The translations under genes and the position numbers were made by a program. 64,000 nt of DNA, taken from positions 62,001 through 126,000 of the forward strand of contig JAAPAO010000006.1 of NCBI GenBank assembly GCA_013115145.1, given 5' to 3'. The notes below the pieces were generated by a model. The model had not been told where the DNA came from. It saw only the letters and a list, made by a program, of their open reading frames with translations, and made no database searches. This DNA comes from Perkinsus chesapeaki ATCC PRA-425 (taxonomy: Eukaryota; Protista; Perkinsozoa). Shown here one piece after another: positions 1 through 7,055 of this stretch (positions within the stretch are counted from its first letter, which is position 1; each line of letters opens with the position of its first letter).

Positions 1-790
1 AATTTATAATTTCCTTTCCATGTTGGTGGTGATTTAAATTCATCTCCGATATCATATTCTTCACGACCATTGAATCGGACTTCATGCTCGTTGGGCTTCA
101 ATGGGTCTGGATCCTCCTTAACCACTGATGCAGTAGCTCGGAATACCTATGAAATTGAATGCTTCACGACGATTAGGTTGCCACCGAAGAAATCATCGAA
201 TTTTTTTATCATTGTTTTTCTCACCAGTTTGCCCTGCTCATCCAGCCAGTCGTTCTTTTTAGAGAGTTCAGATCGGTGAGCAAATCTCCTCCAACCATTA
301 GATAGCCCAGGATATACGAACCTCGAGAATTCCTTCGCCTAGATGAAAGGTTGCGGTGGATCAGAACAATATCATTACGATGGACCTGGACTGGTCAGTG
401 TGGTTCACGAGCTCTATACTGTATTTCACTTTGGATCCGAGAGGGAAGACGTTCACTGAACCTACACGAAGAGGGGAATAGGGATCCCCCGAGGGATACA
501 ATTCGTGCGTGTGGTCATGTCACACTCACTAGTAACACTAATGATAACAGCCGTTCACGAACATGAACTTCGGGTTGGTATTCTTCGAGGTTTCTAATCT
601 CAAGTTCAATCTCCGAGATTAAATATATTATCTCACGGATTGAGTCACCACTTAATCCAAAGTTCCAATCCACTATCGAAAGCATCATTTGCAGAGCTGT
701 GATCATGTCACGATAATCGTACTACCTTTCTTCTCCTCGAAATAAACGTAAGCCGCCAAGTATCCCGCCTTGCTAAAGGGAGCGCCTTTG
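1..790 (-). CDS. Tandem MATH (TRAF-like) domain protein, paralog B (3' end runs off the window; 5' end unresolved)
   Basis: Spliced exons read KAGYLAAYVYFEEKK / SVNVFPLGSKVKYSIELVNHTDQSRSI / GWRRFAHRSELSKKNDWLDEQGKL / ...HEVRFNGREEYDIGDEFKSPPTWKGNYK. Bases 1-170 are clearly homologous to 2467-2630. Confidence 0.7.
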
Positions 791-1465
791 AGTTTCACGT
801 GTACCTGACCACCACTTTTTGACACCGTCTATTTGACAGGAATCGCGGACAGCTGGGCAATGACAACCTGACCGTCACCAGCCGTATCACATGCTTAACA
901 TTAACATTAAGTTGTGAGATTCAACGAAACCTTTGCAGTCAGCAGCGACGCTCACTCACGTGGTAGCTGAAGAATTCTGTCACCATTGCTGGGGATTTCA
1001 CAACGGTGCTTTCATCGTTGGGGTCGACTTGGAATTCCATGGTCACACTTGAAAGAGAATGCTAACAATGAGGGGAACGCCACGAAGAACAGGAGATGTT
1101 CGCATGAAACTATCATGATTGAAGAGTCTCTCAGAGAGACGAACTGGTCCGAGTCTGACAGATGCTGGGTGAACTCGAAACGGTCATAAAAGAACCTCAA
1201 TATCACGCTCAGATCTAGAAGTACCGTCAAACCCACATCGAAAAGACCACAGAACGAGGACCAAAATCAACGCCAATCTATCGCTGATATACGAAAACAC
1301 TTTCTGGTGAAATAGCAGGCAGATGCTTATATCATACTGGATCGCCGATCTCACAGAGGAGTTACTCCGCCGGAGTACTCCCACTCTAGCACGCTTTCCT
1401 CCAGACTTTGGTCGCTGATCATTCTTGGGCTTCTGCGCCAATACTCCGACTAGAACGAAATAGGT

Positions 1466-3282
1466 TTATAGACAGTTCAAGTTCATCGCAAGTACTTGAG
1501 AGCATTGAGATACAATTTTAGGAGGAGGCGCGCCTCCAGCCATGACCGGAAGTACAGCTGCTCTGATTACCTGCCATGTGGCTAGCATTTCGCTTGTCAC
1601 GCGAACTCGTCTCAATAGCGTAATATACAGAGAGAGATACTCACAGAGTGATACTCACAATCTCTTGATCCTCATTTAGCCAGCCACTCCCCTCTTTCCG
1701 TAAGGCTTCGAGAGGTATTAGTTCAGGGCAGCCCCAGCTGCTTCTGAGGGTGTCGAAGGTGTGAATTGCCGTCCACTTCTGAGAAACACCTCGGACTGAG
1801 CTCAGCACCAAAAAGCTGGAGCGTTCGCGCATTTCTCTTGCATCCATAGCACAGCCACGCCCAGGCATATATACGTTCCACCTACTGTTATACACTATCA
1901 GCAAACAGTAAGGCCTATCAAAATGCGCCCCGAAAATGCTCACAATGCTCTGCTTGAAGTCTTTGTGATTTAACGCTTTCATCTTCAGCTGCACCCCACA
2001 ATCCTCTCCAGTATCTAGAGAAGCCTAAATACCAGAGAACGTCTATGCTACCCCGGACTCGACGATATGCGACTGGCTACGATGTTGGAAGTAACGTGTT
2101 TACACGGCAAGGAGACGAACTTCGACTGCCCAGTAGGCAGTGCCTACTCTCCCCATCACAATGTGCCTAGTTAGTTACTATGCTTTACTGAATAGAGTAT
2201 TTCGAAGGTTACAGTAACCAGTAACAACGCTAATGCAACGTTGTTCATTGTTAGGTTAACCAGTATGCCTGGGATGAATCTCACCTAATCTATCCAGAAG
2301 ATGAATGTATGCGGCAAGGAATGGCTGCTGCTTTGGATTTGTGCTAATACCTCCAGGATATACCGCTACCTAAAAGAAATTACAACGTCTTCTCTGAAGA
2401 GCCTGAAATCTTGCTCAGTTTTAGATCGTCGAGTCCAGCAGTTCACCCACTTATGGCCTACTTGAAATTTATAGTTTCCTTTCCATGTTGGTGGTGATTT
2501 AAATTCATCTCCGATACCATATTCTTCACGACCATCAAATCGGACTTCATGCTCATTGAGATTTAGTCGATTTGGATCTTCTTCAACCACTGATGCACGG
2601 ATTTGGAATATCTTCCAGACCACGTTTCCAAATGCGAGGTCACATAGAGCGTACAATGTTATCCTGTTGGTCCAGCCATATTTTCTTATCTGCCAAAGCC
2701 TCTCGTTCGACAAATTTTGGCCATCCCCATATGAGGCTGGGATAAACCTTTCTACAGAAGCTTTTCACCTAGCAAGTAAGGAAATCACTACAGGGCACGC
2801 CATTTCGCGTTCTCCGAGACTTACAATAGGCCTCGATGCATCCTGATGGTTTAGAATGTGAACTTCCATCTTTACATCTCTCCCAAGCGGAAAGGCTTTA
2901 TACGAACCTGCAGTCACACCGAGCTAACCCCATACACAACGCTGGATAGTACACAAGCACACAACGGTGCTTCGACAACAAGTATACCCCACCTACCCTT
3001 CTTTTCTTCGAAATGAAGAAACACGCCAAGATAATCCTCGGAGTTGTTACTCTGGCGTACTTCAACCTTAAAAACAATTAGGGAAGTGACTACAAAACGT
3101 TTGCTGCAGGCAAACCCGTACAGATGATGTAACTAGAAAGATTACCCGGAAGTTAAAGGACTCAGTGGTCATCACTGGAGAGACCATGGTTTCCTTGGCC
3201 GAAGCTGGCACTTGGAACTCTGCAGTCAGGACTCCTTAAGAGAGATATTCGGTATCCAAGCCTAGCGAAACGCACCTTCCAT
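1466..3282 (-). CDS. Tandem MATH-MATH domain protein, paralog A (multi-exon)
   Basis: MATH motifs across exons: VEVRQSNNSEDYLGVFLHFEEKK, GWPKFVEREALADKKIWLDQQDNI, VYPGGISTNPKQQPFLAAYIHL, MKALNHKDFKQSI, SWGCPELIPLEALRKEGSGWLNEDQE. ATG at 3282 is followed by a 41-nt intron; the C-terminus is approximate. Confidence 0.75.
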
Positions 3283-3517
3283 AGCTTGGGGAGGGAGAAG
3301 GAACACCATTACAAAGAACTTGCTACCGAGGAGTGACTGCTCTATGAGAGACAATGGATTGGAGGCTGCGTTGGTGACGAAAACACTGTGGCTCTGGGTC
3401 ACTAAAGACGTCATCGCGGTGCAAAGACACTCTCCTTGGTCCTCTAACGCAACTGTGAAGATATAATACATGTCAAGCTTTCTAGATACGAGTAACAATT
3501 TAACATGTCCAGGAATC

Positions 3518-6500
3518 TCAATTAACCCCACCAAGGGCGACCACGGGCTCCGTCCAATCCATACCGAATAGCTTCTCAAGGCACTCCAGGGGAAATGCCA
3601 CAGCCGTAAGATTAAGTTCACGGAGCGCGACTGTGCCTACACCATACATGCGCCTAGCGGGAGGTGAGTCACCTCAGGCGACAGAAGCACTGCAGAGGAA
3701 AGGTTACTAGATTTGCTAGGGATGGAGCATCCCATCAACTCCATGTCTTTCACGGCCCACCAGTTTTCATCATACCTGAGCGGTTCTACCAGGAACCATA
3801 CTGGGGCGGAGCTGCGCAGAATGTACATGTCTAGATACACTGAAACCGTGTCATCTCTGCTGTCTACGGCCGAGAACCATACAGGATCCCATCCAGAATA
3901 GTCGGCACAAATGCGAAGCACCTTGGGTTCCCTGAGGTAGTGCAACACCAGCATGGTGGTAGCAGACAATAGCTACCACTCATCAAGAGCTGTAATGTAT
4001 CTTCTCCGTCCACCACCGGAGGATCGCCGTGCCAACTCCAGCGCTATACTGGACCAATTAGCTGCACTAACCACCAAGTCAATGTCTCGAGTGTGTGGCA
4101 GATGGTCCTTCTCGCGAACAGCTCCTAAATGCCCTCACCATAAGTGTAGCCCTCATCCCTATCGGCCTACCCAGTAGAGTTCCATAAATTGGTGTATAGG
4201 ATATGGTCAACGAATTTAGAACGTCCAATATATCCCGCAGGATTTGATGTTGAAGATCAGAGCAGCATAGGACGCCAGAGCTAGACATTGTATCTGATAT
4301 CTGTACACATTGTAAAAGGACCACATAGATGCAACCTCACGACGTTCTGGACTCTGTCCTTGTAGCTATCCTTGCAACTCCCATGTCGGCTGCATGGTGG
4401 TGTCCGACACAACAGATCAGCGGTACTCGTCATTGAAAGTGGTTCACTGCTCAGAGGGAGGTTGCTCACACCAGCTGCAAGAGATGCCTGAATCTGGTTC
4501 TCGTAGATGGCTTTTAACGTATCTTCTGGTGTACGCTGTCTCTCATTGAAGATGCTTTCCATACGTTGATGTATGTACAGATTCAAAAGTATGACTAATA
4601 CAGTTGTTTGAAGGAACTGGGACCAACCACCAGTAACCAGGGCGACTCCTAATAACGCTGTGAGTAGTAACTCAGATAGGTGCCCATCCAGTATGGCTTG
4701 AAAGCCCGGAAAGAACACACGTGCCGGAGGGGTTACAGATTGCTGTAGCATTTCCGCAGAGTCTATGAGCTGCTTCACCCCAATCGTCCAGGTACTCATG
4801 TCATAGTAACCTTCTTCTGTAACCCCACCAGTGATCCACAATCTACCATGAAATACGGTGGCACCAGCAGACAGGCGTGTACCACTTGGGAAGGTGACAG
4901 AACGGTACCATTTCGGAGTAGGCTCTGCTAGGTCTAATGAGTAAATACTGGAGTACCCCACAACAGCGATCCAAGCTCCAAGTCCTAGCGAGACCAAAAC
5001 CGGTTTACTGTGATCAAGTCGGAAAGGCAAAGGCGAGCATTGATGCCAGTTCAAATAGCGGTCGGTAGGGCAGAAAACGCGGGAGTCAATACCGAGAATA
5101 GCAACTTGGTTAGAAGCAACTACTGTGCCGATGCAACCTTCAAACGGTAGTGTATGTTCTCCTTTTCTCCACGTGTTGTCGAGGTTACGAAACCATACAT
5201 CACACAAGAGCTGACCACTCGCAGATCGCCCACCAAAAACTGCTAAGTCACCAAAGGGCTGTAGTAAGACACCGTGGCAGTGTCTTCCGCTGACTTCTGC
5301 TGGAGCACTCCTCGTTATACACTTCAAAGCACCCTGTTTTCTTAGGTTACAAGCTAAGTGTGTCGCGTTGCCAAGATCAGTGAGACCACCATAGATTTCA
5401 ATTCTATCCTCTTGCGCCAATACTTGGTGATAACTCCTGCCACTTGAGAGCCCTTCAACTGGCAGTTGCCGCCATTTGCGCATCGAGGTATCGAATTGCC
5501 AAATGTCATCAAGGCGTCCTAACGGGACATCTCGTAAAGCTACAGAACTTCCAAGGTCACCACCTATATTAACTTCTCGTGACATATATGCCTCAGTGAA
5601 TGAACTATTTACAACACCATGGCCACCCACTAGAAGAAGGCGTTCTCCCATTACCACCAAGCTGTGGCCAGCACGGGGCGACCACTCATTAGAACTATAA
5701 CTCATCCGACACCAATCGAGAGGGTCCGCCGAGCATTCCCATGAGAACAGGGAATCATCATCCGCGGTGAAAAGGGCAACATTACTCAACTTTCCTTGAT
5801 TATAATGGATGTGGGCCGTGCAGCTCATGCTTGATAGTTGGCATCTCTGGGATCGAACATCATAATTACCGGATCTACACAAAATGTTGTGAGCGCAACG
5901 ATCGGCACACTCCTTTAGGCTCTCTGTGAACCGGTTCAACAAATCCTGCCATACTTCACAGTGTGCTCCAAGTGGAACGTAACGAAATACTATCGGAAGA
6001 GGTATAAGCCTGTCTAGTTCATCATCTTTGTCATTCTCCGATACAAGATCCGACCGCCGGGAAGAAAAACCATCTACAGGTAGACGAGTGATGCCATCGT
6101 AGTGAAGGTTACGTGCCCAGACAATACTTATAGCAAGATATTTCAGTTCACCACACCTATTGCATCTTTCAATAGCGGGAGCCCTTGGCGTCCATACCAG
6201 CGGTTGAGGTTCTGGCTGACGAGCTGTCAGAGCATCAACAAGGTCGCTGCTGCCAAGAAATCTCAGGGTTTTTAAGACTTCTTTGCCGCCTATTATGAGA
6301 CTCGACAGTAGCATATAAAGACGCTCCTGCTCTGAGAGTCGTGGCTGCACCCACCATTCCACTGACCTTGGCTCCCCCTGAGCTCTACCCGATCGTTGGT
6401 CAGACATACACGTTCTGAGTATGTCACGCGCTTGAGTATGAAGGTGGTCTAACACTATCTGAGGCACGCTTTCATGCAGCCAACATTTGAGGATGTATTT

Positions 6501-6713
6501 GGGGATAAGACGTAGGAGGGCATATCGCTCAACCGGGACACGTGAGAGAGTCGGAGCCTGGGAGGGGAAATGATTCCCTTGCCATGAAGTAAAATCGAAG
6601 TCAATATGATCTTCTATGCCACCCAACTTTTGCCTGGTGGGCAAAGACCACTCTGCCGACGAACCCACCGATTGGGAGAGAGCAGAAAATGGTAGGATTA
6701 AACAGAACCTCAT
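3518..6713 (-). CDS. Signal peptide + Kelch beta-propeller + TM hairpin + LicD/fukutin-type nucleotidyltransferase domain
   Basis: Exon 1 (6713-4341, 791 codons) has Kelch repeats (PRAGHSLVVMGERLLLVGG, GRSYHQV..IEIYGG, GRHCHGV..LAVFGG, AGATVFHGRLWITGG) and a hydrophobic pair (LLLTALLGVALVTGGWSQFLQTTVLVILLNLYI). In-frame introns 4301-4340 and 4125-4170 assemble YGTLLGAVREKDHLPHTRDIDLVV. Later exons give RICADY, VYLDMY and AFPLECLEKLFGMDWTEP. The ORF-track start at 6752 is TTG; the first ATG is 6713. Confidence 0.8.
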
Positions 6714-7055
6714 ACGAATCCCTATGAAGGCAATAGTAAGAAAATAAACCAATGCTCCGCTAGCTCTAGCATTTCAGGTGTTTCATGCGAAATGATTGAG
6801 ATTCGTCTGAGCATGCGATACATTATCATTATCATGCTTATCAGGTCTTTCAGATGTTGAACGTTGACCAACGTTTCCCAAAGCCCATCAGCTACCATCC
6901 TTGACTACTAGTTAACGCAATAACGTGCTTTCTAATAACAAACCACTATCAACCACTATCTTTGCTATGCCTGTTGGCAACATACCACATAAGACATTAT
7001 TTCAGCAAGATGGATTACATCAAGCTGTGTACTCGATAAGAATATTTTCACAATC

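Follow-up and report, generated by a model that had tools for sequence, protein, structure and literature searches.

The minus strand of a 64,000-nucleotide stretch of the Perkinsus chesapeaki ATCC PRA-425 genome (the window; contig JAAPAO010000006.1, positions 62,001 to 126,000) carries a gene whose reconstructed sequence joins a Kelch β-propeller and a LicD/FKTN/FKRP-type domain in one gene product. We consider it probable that this single gene encodes a 980-amino acid membrane protein of the secretory pathway with a luminal FKRP-like transferase domain, conserved in Perkinsus and the dinoflagellates. From the N-terminus, the protein consists of a signal-peptide-like start, about 250 amino acids without family assignment, a PAN/apple domain, a six-bladed Kelch domain, two hydrophobic helices, a cysteine-rich loop, and a LicD/FKTN/FKRP-type domain of the nucleotidyltransferase (NTase) fold.

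Evidence for one fused gene

The PAN_1 and Kelch matches of Pfam fall within an open reading frame (ORF) of 823 amino acids spanning positions 4281 to 6752 of the minus strand. The preliminary description of this DNA held that this ORF is only the first exon and continues through a phase 0 and a phase 1 intron into LicD-type exons. Both introns (4340 to 4301 and 4170 to 4125) are exact when the minus strand is read, three more (introns 3 to 5) are required to reach the stop codon, and an end-to-end alignment with the Perkinsus olseni ortholog bears out a single gene. The spliced coding sequence begins with the ATG at 6713, contains five GT-AG introns of 40 to 71 nucleotides, and yields a 980-amino acid product that includes YGTLLGAVREKDHLPHTRDIDLVV, RICADY, YLDMY, and FPLECLEKLFGMDWTEP (Table 1). 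Exon 1 encodes in order the signal-peptide-like start, the N-terminal region, the PAN and Kelch domains, the hydrophobic hairpin, a linker, and three cysteines of the loop, and reading through intron 1 leads to the stop at 4281 to 4283 that ends the 823-amino acid ORF.

The fusion is judged to be real on five lines of evidence, namely the ortholog, the intron positions, the public protein for this locus, the wider family, and the domain that straddles intron 1. The only close homolog in the large protein collection is a hypothetical protein of P. olseni, present as several alternative gene models, and homolog searches with the whole Kelch ORF and with a nine-sequence alignment gave Perkinsus proteins only, the candidate collection being saturated on Kelch words. 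Alignment of the spliced product with KAF4672766 of P. olseni runs from residue 29 to residue 965 at 48% identity (E = 0), unbroken across the Kelch-LicD junction, which by sequence comparison is a match far beyond chance. Intron 1 has a GT...AG counterpart at the matching P. olseni junction, and for introns 2 to 5 the exon matches obtained by tblastn on the P. olseni contig break at the same protein positions, with stops in the intervening stretches. The C-terminal sequence before the stop is ...LGGVN in the two species alike. The LicD-type profile match begins in exon 1 at residue 760 and crosses all five introns to residue 972, so intron 1 splits the LicD-type domain itself. Between the two Perkinsus species this domain is the best conserved part (62% identity, compared with 49% for the Kelch domain and 26% for the hairpin).

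Table 1. Coordinates of the Kelch-LicD gene and its encoded features in the window
Feature	Position	Strand	Description
Whole coding sequence	3518..6713	-	Six exons, 980 codons and TGA stop at 3518-3520; splice model
Exon 1	4341..6713	-	Residues 1-791, from signal-peptide-like start up to and including three conserved Cys of the loop in the LicD-type domain
Intron 1	4301..4340	-	40 nt, phase 0, GTGAGG...ACAG
Exon 2	4171..4300	-	Residues 792-835 (part); CC pair and hG[GS] motif YGT
Intron 2	4125..4170	-	46 nt, phase 1, GTAGGC...TTAG
Exon 3	3977..4124	-	AVR...TRDIDLVV, bears DxD (D848, D850)
Intron 3	3932..3976	-	45 nt, GT-AG
Exon 4	3827..3931	-	RICADY...YLD(M), bears distal catalytic Asp D918
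Intron 4	3776..3826	-	51 nt, GT-AG; in frame and stop-free, reads through as ORF
Exon 5	3708..3775	-	(M)YDENWWAVKDMELMGC...; kept in P. olseni and dinoflagellates
Intron 5	3637..3707	-	71 nt, GT-AG
Exon 6	3518..3636	-	...FPLECLEKLFGMDWTEPVVALGGVN, then stop; GVN C-terminus common to the family
Signal-peptide-like segment	6657..6713	-	MRFCLILPFSALSQSVG...; read from sequence
PAN/apple domain	5709..5960	-	About residues 252-335; Pfam PAN_1 26.2 bits, cut-off 21.4
Kelch β-propeller	4719..5708	-	About residues 336-665; Pfam PF24681 61.8 bits, cut-off 50
Two adjacent hydrophobic helices	4569..4679	-	Residues 679-697 and 700-715 with GGWSQ between; candidate membrane hairpin; hydropathy scan
LicD/FKTN/FKRP-type domain	3545..4436	-	Residues 760-972, interrupted by all five introns; local profile and ortholog model
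Cys-rich loop	4256..4409	-	C769-x4-C774-x5-C780 (exon 1) and C803-C804 (exon 2); split by intron 1

The LicD/FKTN/FKRP-type domain

The Pfam, PDB, and structure comparisons of the LicD-type domain were made with the P. olseni ortholog, and the window protein was compared by local HMMER. A hidden Markov model (HMM) built from 40 distant LicD-type homologs matches the window protein over residues 760 to 972 with 127 bits (E 4e-35 at Z = 1e6). Since the 40 sequences had been retrieved with the ortholog, a match of some kind was to be expected, but the score and the full-length coverage are well beyond that. Translations of the single exons of the window gene, pieces too short for the purpose, gave no Pfam LicD match. 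PF04991 is matched by 49 of 51 aligned homologous domains and by the dinoflagellate family members (22.5 to 38.8 bits, with four of the five reaching the cut-off). On these profile scores, membership of the LicD/FKTN/FKRP family is supported transitively and is marginal when the P. olseni domain is scored directly. The family is group XXIII of the NTase fold (Kuchta et al. 2009).

Searches of the PDB point to FKRP, which is the top match by phmmer (E 3.8e-4) and the sole match of the family profile (E 2.9e-5). The P. olseni domain shares 62% identity with the window domain, and its AlphaFold2 (AF2) model has a predicted local distance difference test score (pLDDT) of 84.8 and a predicted template modeling score of 0.81. 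Foldseek places FKRP in the top 13 positions (E 2e-6), and VIA-align superimposes the model on FKRP with Z 16.0 and a root mean square deviation of 2.7 Å over 150 of 178 residues, the next fold being that of ANT(2'')-Ia with Z 11.9. The assignment of a LicD/fukutin/FKRP-type domain in the preliminary description, for which structure prediction had been proposed as a check, agrees with these comparisons and with the presence of the catalytic motifs in an NTase-fold domain. Among the Swiss-Prot models, the matches are FKRP, Rickettsia proteins annotated only as uncharacterized, Haemophilus influenzae LicD, Caenorhabditis elegans W02B3.4, and FKTN; a search of AFDB clusters is headed by a 1,277-amino acid [quoted passage not shown] and a protein atlas search returned generic LicD clusters only.

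The motifs that define the catalytic site of FKRP, hG[GS], DxD, and a distal aspartate, have been described together with their catalytic roles (PMC6965139). The window protein has hG[GS] as Y830-G831-T832 within YGTLLGAVR, with G and T at least 90% conserved in the alignment of the domain (alignment A1); DxD as D848-I-D850, invariant in the same alignment, as are a G and an R; and the distal aspartate as D918 in YLDMY, again at least 90% conserved. D848, D850, and D918 correspond to FKRP D362, D364, and D416.

A LicD-type domain also occurs at residues 207 to 393 of AFDB entry C5L9G2, a 450-amino acid protein named "Clathrin coat assembly protein ap19, putative," which from the style of its accession we take to be from Perkinsus marinus. 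It is probably a misnamed paralog, in which case Perkinsus would have several LicD-type genes.

A cysteine-rich loop ahead of the catalytic motifs

In FKRP, four cysteines (C289, C296, C317, and C318) form a C4 zinc-finger loop that is conserved only in FKRP orthologs and is absent from FKTN (PMC6965139). HMMER aligns C803 and C804 of the window protein with the FKRP CC pair, at an identical spacing of 26 residues to hG[GS], and from this spacing and the published FKRP numbering (PMC6965139) C803 and C804 may be the equivalents of the zinc ligands C317 and C318. The upstream cysteines were not aligned to the FKRP loop by HMMER with the family profile against the PDB. C769, C774, and C780 are invariant from Perkinsus to the dinoflagellates (alignment A4), and a C..PPCSR..C...CC pattern precedes hG[GS] in most of the distant homologs (P0028-P0157); ten of the homologs were traced to their records, and four of them proved to be EukProt entries from protist transcriptomes, one from the dinoflagellate Polykrikos. 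The pattern suggests a broad Cys-loop subfamily of LicD-type proteins. The full-length AF2 model of the ortholog has a pLDDT of about 48 to 68 over the loop. We put forward as a hypothesis that the dinozoan proteins have an FKRP-like zinc-finger loop, and the cysteines hint at a wider spread of this loop than FKRP orthologs alone.

N-terminus, PAN and Kelch domains, and hydrophobic helices

The N-terminus of the 980-amino acid model, MRFCLILPFSAL..., is signal-peptide-like, and P. olseni has a methionine and a hydrophobic run at the same place; the dinoflagellate homologs begin with clearer signal-peptide-like segments than those of Perkinsus. The cysteines of the PAN domain are invariant between Perkinsus and the dinoflagellates (alignment A2). 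Within the propeller, Kelch_1 and Kelch_4 likewise score above their cut-offs, and the P. olseni Kelch model matches six-bladed Kelch domains with Z 15 to 18 over about 250 to 270 residues, at moderate model confidence in this part. The matches are to six-bladed Kelch domains in general (ESP, LZTR1, KLHDC2/3, and YjhT/NanM) and give no specific functional lead. Most of the long dinoflagellate homologs scanned have two clear transmembrane (TM)-like segments between the Kelch and LicD domains.

A family of PAN-Kelch-LicD proteins in dinoflagellates

An exhaustive HMMER search with the C-terminal domain of the ortholog found 287 proteins at E<1e-3. Among these are proteins of 1,160 to 1,330 amino acids in which Pfam matches PAN_1, Kelch, and LicD. 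In all, more than 10 dinoflagellate proteins of 1,090 to 1,330 amino acids have PAN/Kelch and LicD domains, several of them from transcript assemblies (Trinity, MMETSP). A search restricted to the LicD part gave further members with Kelch and LicD from Effrenium voratum, Symbiodinium natans, Symbiodinium sp. CCMP2592, Cladocopium goreaui, and Pyrodinium bahamense and from Trinity transcript ORFs. When five family proteins were rescanned with Pfam, PAN_1 was matched in all five, above its cut-off in two, and Kelch and LicD were matched too. All full-length dinoflagellate members end in G-V/I-N. A partial match, covering about half of the LicD-type region, comes from a protein of the syndinian Amoebophrya sp. 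A120 for which no Pfam domains are recorded.

A single uninterrupted ORF is present on each of two Logan contigs, with 1,192 amino acids on the contig of 3.8 kb and 1,309 on that of 4.0 kb. The dinoflagellate spliced leader was not found at the 5' ends of these two contigs, so their origin from transcripts rests on the single uninterrupted ORF in each and on the separate Trinity and MMETSP entries; one of the contigs starts with what we take to be a Nextera adapter. In Effrenium voratum, five near-identical PAN-Kelch-LicD proteins (P0017, P0160, and P0162-P0164) have the consecutive accessions CAJ1373176-80, and four of these five, out of six members of the Effrenium cluster, are listed on one 303-kb contig, which suggests a tandem array. 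Tandem arrays are common for dinoflagellate genes.

At least eight dinozoan species have proteins of this architecture in public databases, under automatic names or misnamed as "ADO2/Adagio protein 2." The preliminary description did not know the architecture from characterized proteins and had named wide existing annotation as a point that would tell against its proposal; this point applies in part, as the public model of the window gene already joins the two domains and UniProt automatically names the dinoflagellate members [quoted passage not shown] In the full-text literature we found no paper on the architecture: searches for LicD with dinoflagellates and for LicD or FKRP with protists returned none, and LicD with Kelch returned a mollusc database paper only. 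The family, from Perkinsus to the core dinoflagellates, has a known kind of enzyme in an architecture for which we found no published description.

The public gene model and the neighboring MATH genes

The public protein (P0009, 1,537 amino acids) joins Kelch to LicD through introns 1 to 3 and is identical to the 980-amino acid model from Met103. It is wrong in three places: the N-terminus, the splicing of exons 4 to 6, and a fusion with a MATH gene. The public start is Met103, so the signal-peptide-like segment is omitted; homology with P. olseni reaches upstream to residue 29 (region 6408-6713), and this homology and the conserved signal-peptide-like methionine start imply that the annotated N-terminus is truncated. 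At the other end, the public model keeps intron 4, leaves out exon 5, and splices away the conserved GVN-stop terminus to join a downstream MATH-repeat gene. We rejected this MATH-domain C-terminal extension because P. olseni and every full-length dinoflagellate member keep the GVN-stop end. Intron 4 also holds a small GGTTC...GAACC hairpin.

Directly downstream of the Kelch-LicD gene, positions 3 to 3426 of the minus strand contain at least two copies of a MATH-domain gene, which P0009 merges, and the first of these probably starts about 95 nucleotides past the Kelch-LicD stop. In P. olseni, MATH genes lie on both sides of the ortholog and are likewise misfused in some models (P0002, P0004).

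Discussion

The proposed arrangement is one in which the signal peptide would direct the PAN-Kelch part to the lumen or the cell exterior and the chain would return to that same side through the helical hairpin, so that the catalytic domain would then be luminal, as in Golgi FKRP and FKTN. Two helices imply that the flanking domains lie on the same side, whichever side that is, and the luminal or extracellular side is favored by the signal-peptide-like start and the cysteine-conserved PAN domain. That a signal peptide and a TM hairpin would put both domains on the same side was already part of the preliminary description, and the elements that it calls for, a signal-peptide-like start and two helices, are found in the predicted protein, in a pattern that is much clearer in the dinoflagellate homologs. 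The enzyme would use a nucleotide-activated donor with Mg2+/Mn2+, two metal ions being bound by the three aspartates, and by family precedent it would most likely move a phospho-alcohol or phospho-sugar to an acceptor glycan. Established donors in the family are cytidine diphosphate (CDP)-choline for LicD and mf1, CDP-ribitol for FKTN and FKRP, and guanosine diphosphate (GDP)-mannose for MNN4 (PMC2794190; PMC11982090; PMC6965139), and CDP-glycerol is a further family precedent. The PAN-Kelch part would select or hold the acceptor, comparable to the stem domain of FKRP.

Several observations weigh against this reading of the window protein. The P. olseni domain scores 21.7 to 22.0 bits against PF04991 (E 2e-4), just below the cut-off of 22.6, and matches the first 45 or so profile positions only. 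The equivalent of FKRP Asp360 is a threonine (T-R-D-I-D), T-x-D-x-D being found throughout the subfamily; in FKRP this aspartate binds the site I metal and is essential (PMC6965139). The Perkinsus helices are short (19 and 16 amino acids) and weakly hydrophobic, and a threshold hydropathy scan of P. olseni found no TM-like segments, so the hairpin and the topology are least certain in exactly the Perkinsus lineage. Finally, the full-length AF2 model of the ortholog is poor (mean pLDDT 54, with 85 to 95 over LicD and 60 to 78 over Kelch) and carries no interdomain information.

It is very improbable that the locus holds two genes, a Kelch protein ending at 4281 to 4283 and a separate LicD protein starting at the ATG at 4287 (MSSSGVLCC...), with the AG at 4301 as a possible spliced-leader acceptor. 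Such an arrangement would account for the stop met 19 codons into the read-through of intron 1, for the in-frame ATG just past the acceptor, and for the tight gene spacing, with the next gene about 95 nucleotides downstream, and spliced-leader trans-splicing is described for Perkinsus (PMC3101222). However, P. olseni has no methionine between the junction and the CC motif, so that ATG 4287 is without a counterpart there, the conserved PPCSR..C part of the LicD-type domain sits upstream of intron 1, both domains occur together in dinoflagellate transcript-derived ORFs as well as in the public model, and a stand-alone LicD product would be without a targeting signal. More weight, although we still hold it to be unlikely, can be given to one protein with both domains in the cytosol, in which an uncleaved N-terminus and a monotopic or re-entrant hairpin would leave the enzyme at the cytosolic face, where its substrates could, for instance, be lipid-linked precursors like those of bacterial LicD. 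The weakness of the Perkinsus helices would suit a cytosolic protein, the Kelch domains of well-studied proteins among the structural matches are mostly cytosolic, and CDP-donors are made in the cytosol. Against it are the PAN/apple domain with invariant cysteines, typical of extracellular or luminal domains, the signal-peptide-like N-termini across the family, and the two full-length TM segments of the dinoflagellate homologs. FKRP is Golgi-luminal in its orientation. It is also the nearest relative with a solved structure, an enzyme of the secretory pathway that was crystallized in a secreted form (PMC6965139), which likewise argues against a cytosolic protein.

The activity of the fused protein might also differ from that proposed, the LicD-type domain being an AMPylation-like nucleotidyltransferase, an MNN4-type mannosyl-phosphate transferase, or a noncatalytic binding module rather than a phospho-alcohol transferase. 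The fold is shared with the ANT(2'')-Ia, LnuA, and MenT nucleotidyltransferases (Z 10 to 12), the LicD family includes MNN4, whose donor is GDP-mannose (PMC2794190), and both the threonine at the Asp360 position and the confinement of the Pfam match to the N-terminal third are compatible with such a departure. We nevertheless regard a different activity as decidedly unlikely, because FKRP stands clearly above the other NTases in the structural comparison (Z 16 versus 12), and the family-specific GTLLGAVR and YG-x-W-x-P motifs and all three metal-binding aspartates are kept, which argues against a dead domain.

Among known proteins, one close comparison is with FKRP itself, the ribitol-5-phosphate transferase (PDB 6KAJ-6KAN), which is the best match to the Perkinsus domain in the PDB by both sequence and structure. 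Both proteins have the NTase fold with hG[GS], DxD, and the distal aspartate, both have the CC pair at the same distance before hG[GS] with further conserved cysteines upstream, and both place the catalytic domain C-terminal to a noncatalytic domain, which in FKRP helps in acceptor recognition (PMC6965139). They differ in that FKRP has an N-terminal type II anchor, whereas the Perkinsus protein has a predicted internal two-helix hairpin after the signal peptide and, as noted, a threonine in place of Asp360; in that the upstream cysteines are spaced C-x4-C-x5-C in Perkinsus and C-x6-C in FKRP; and in that the catalytic core, at about 175 amino acids, is more compact in Perkinsus. The FKRP_N stem domain (PF22921) was not found by Pfam in the Perkinsus protein or in the dinoflagellate proteins scanned, which have PAN and Kelch domains instead. 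FKTN and the nematode fukutin-like proteins W02B3.4 and T07A5.1 are likewise enzymes of the eukaryotic secretory pathway with a LicD-type fold (Foldseek E 5e-4 to 4e-3), but their N-terminal domains are different.

The bacterial phosphorylcholine transferases LicD, LicD2, and Mycoplasma mf1 belong to the same Pfam family (PF04991), and H. influenzae LicD is a structural match. The donor of these enzymes is CDP-activated, and they require a divalent metal (PMC2794190; PMC11982090). Unlike the Perkinsus protein, they are soluble or peripheral cytoplasmic proteins of about 250 to 270 amino acids without the Cys loop and without PAN or Kelch domains, and their acidic motif is of the DDDxD type, in contrast to TxDxD in Perkinsus. 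The dinoflagellate proteins of Effrenium, Symbiodinium, Cladocopium, and Pyrodinium have the same full architecture at about 27% identity over the whole length, with LicD-type domains 38 to 44% identical to that of the P. olseni ortholog and the same GVN C-terminus, but are longer and have stronger TM segments.

The preliminary description had suggested that the enzyme could decorate parasite surface glycans. This is too narrow, and a parasite-specific surface decoration was rejected, as the same protein occurs in free-living and symbiotic dinoflagellates. Because free-living and photosynthetic dinoflagellates share the protein, its target is more likely to be a conserved cell-covering or secretory glycoconjugate than one specific to parasitism.

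What the analysis provides is a corrected gene model, with a signal-peptide-like start, the splicing of the catalytic domain, and separation from the MATH gene, and a defined family, from Perkinsus to the core dinoflagellates, in which a LicD/FKRP-type catalytic domain is coupled to a PAN-Kelch ectodomain. Its value lies in a well-specified and testable candidate, predicted throughout, rather than in a demonstrated new mechanism. Enzymes of the LicD family attach phosphocholine or ribitol-phosphate to surface glycans, and such glycans are important for host interaction in bacteria and for the function of dystroglycan in animals. If the dinozoans have a conserved luminal member, an unreported phosphodiester modification of their cell covering would be predicted. 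A more specific proposal, which we offer as speculative and itself rather improbable, is that the dinozoan PAN-Kelch-LicD proteins are zinc-loop FKRP-like enzymes that put ribitol-, glycerol-, or a similar phosphate on a cell-covering glycan, with the PAN-Kelch part recognizing the acceptor. If this were true, the FKRP-type phosphodiester modification of glycans, whose characterization has so far been confined to animals and bacteria, would count among the ancient traits of the alveolates, with a lineage-specific architecture.

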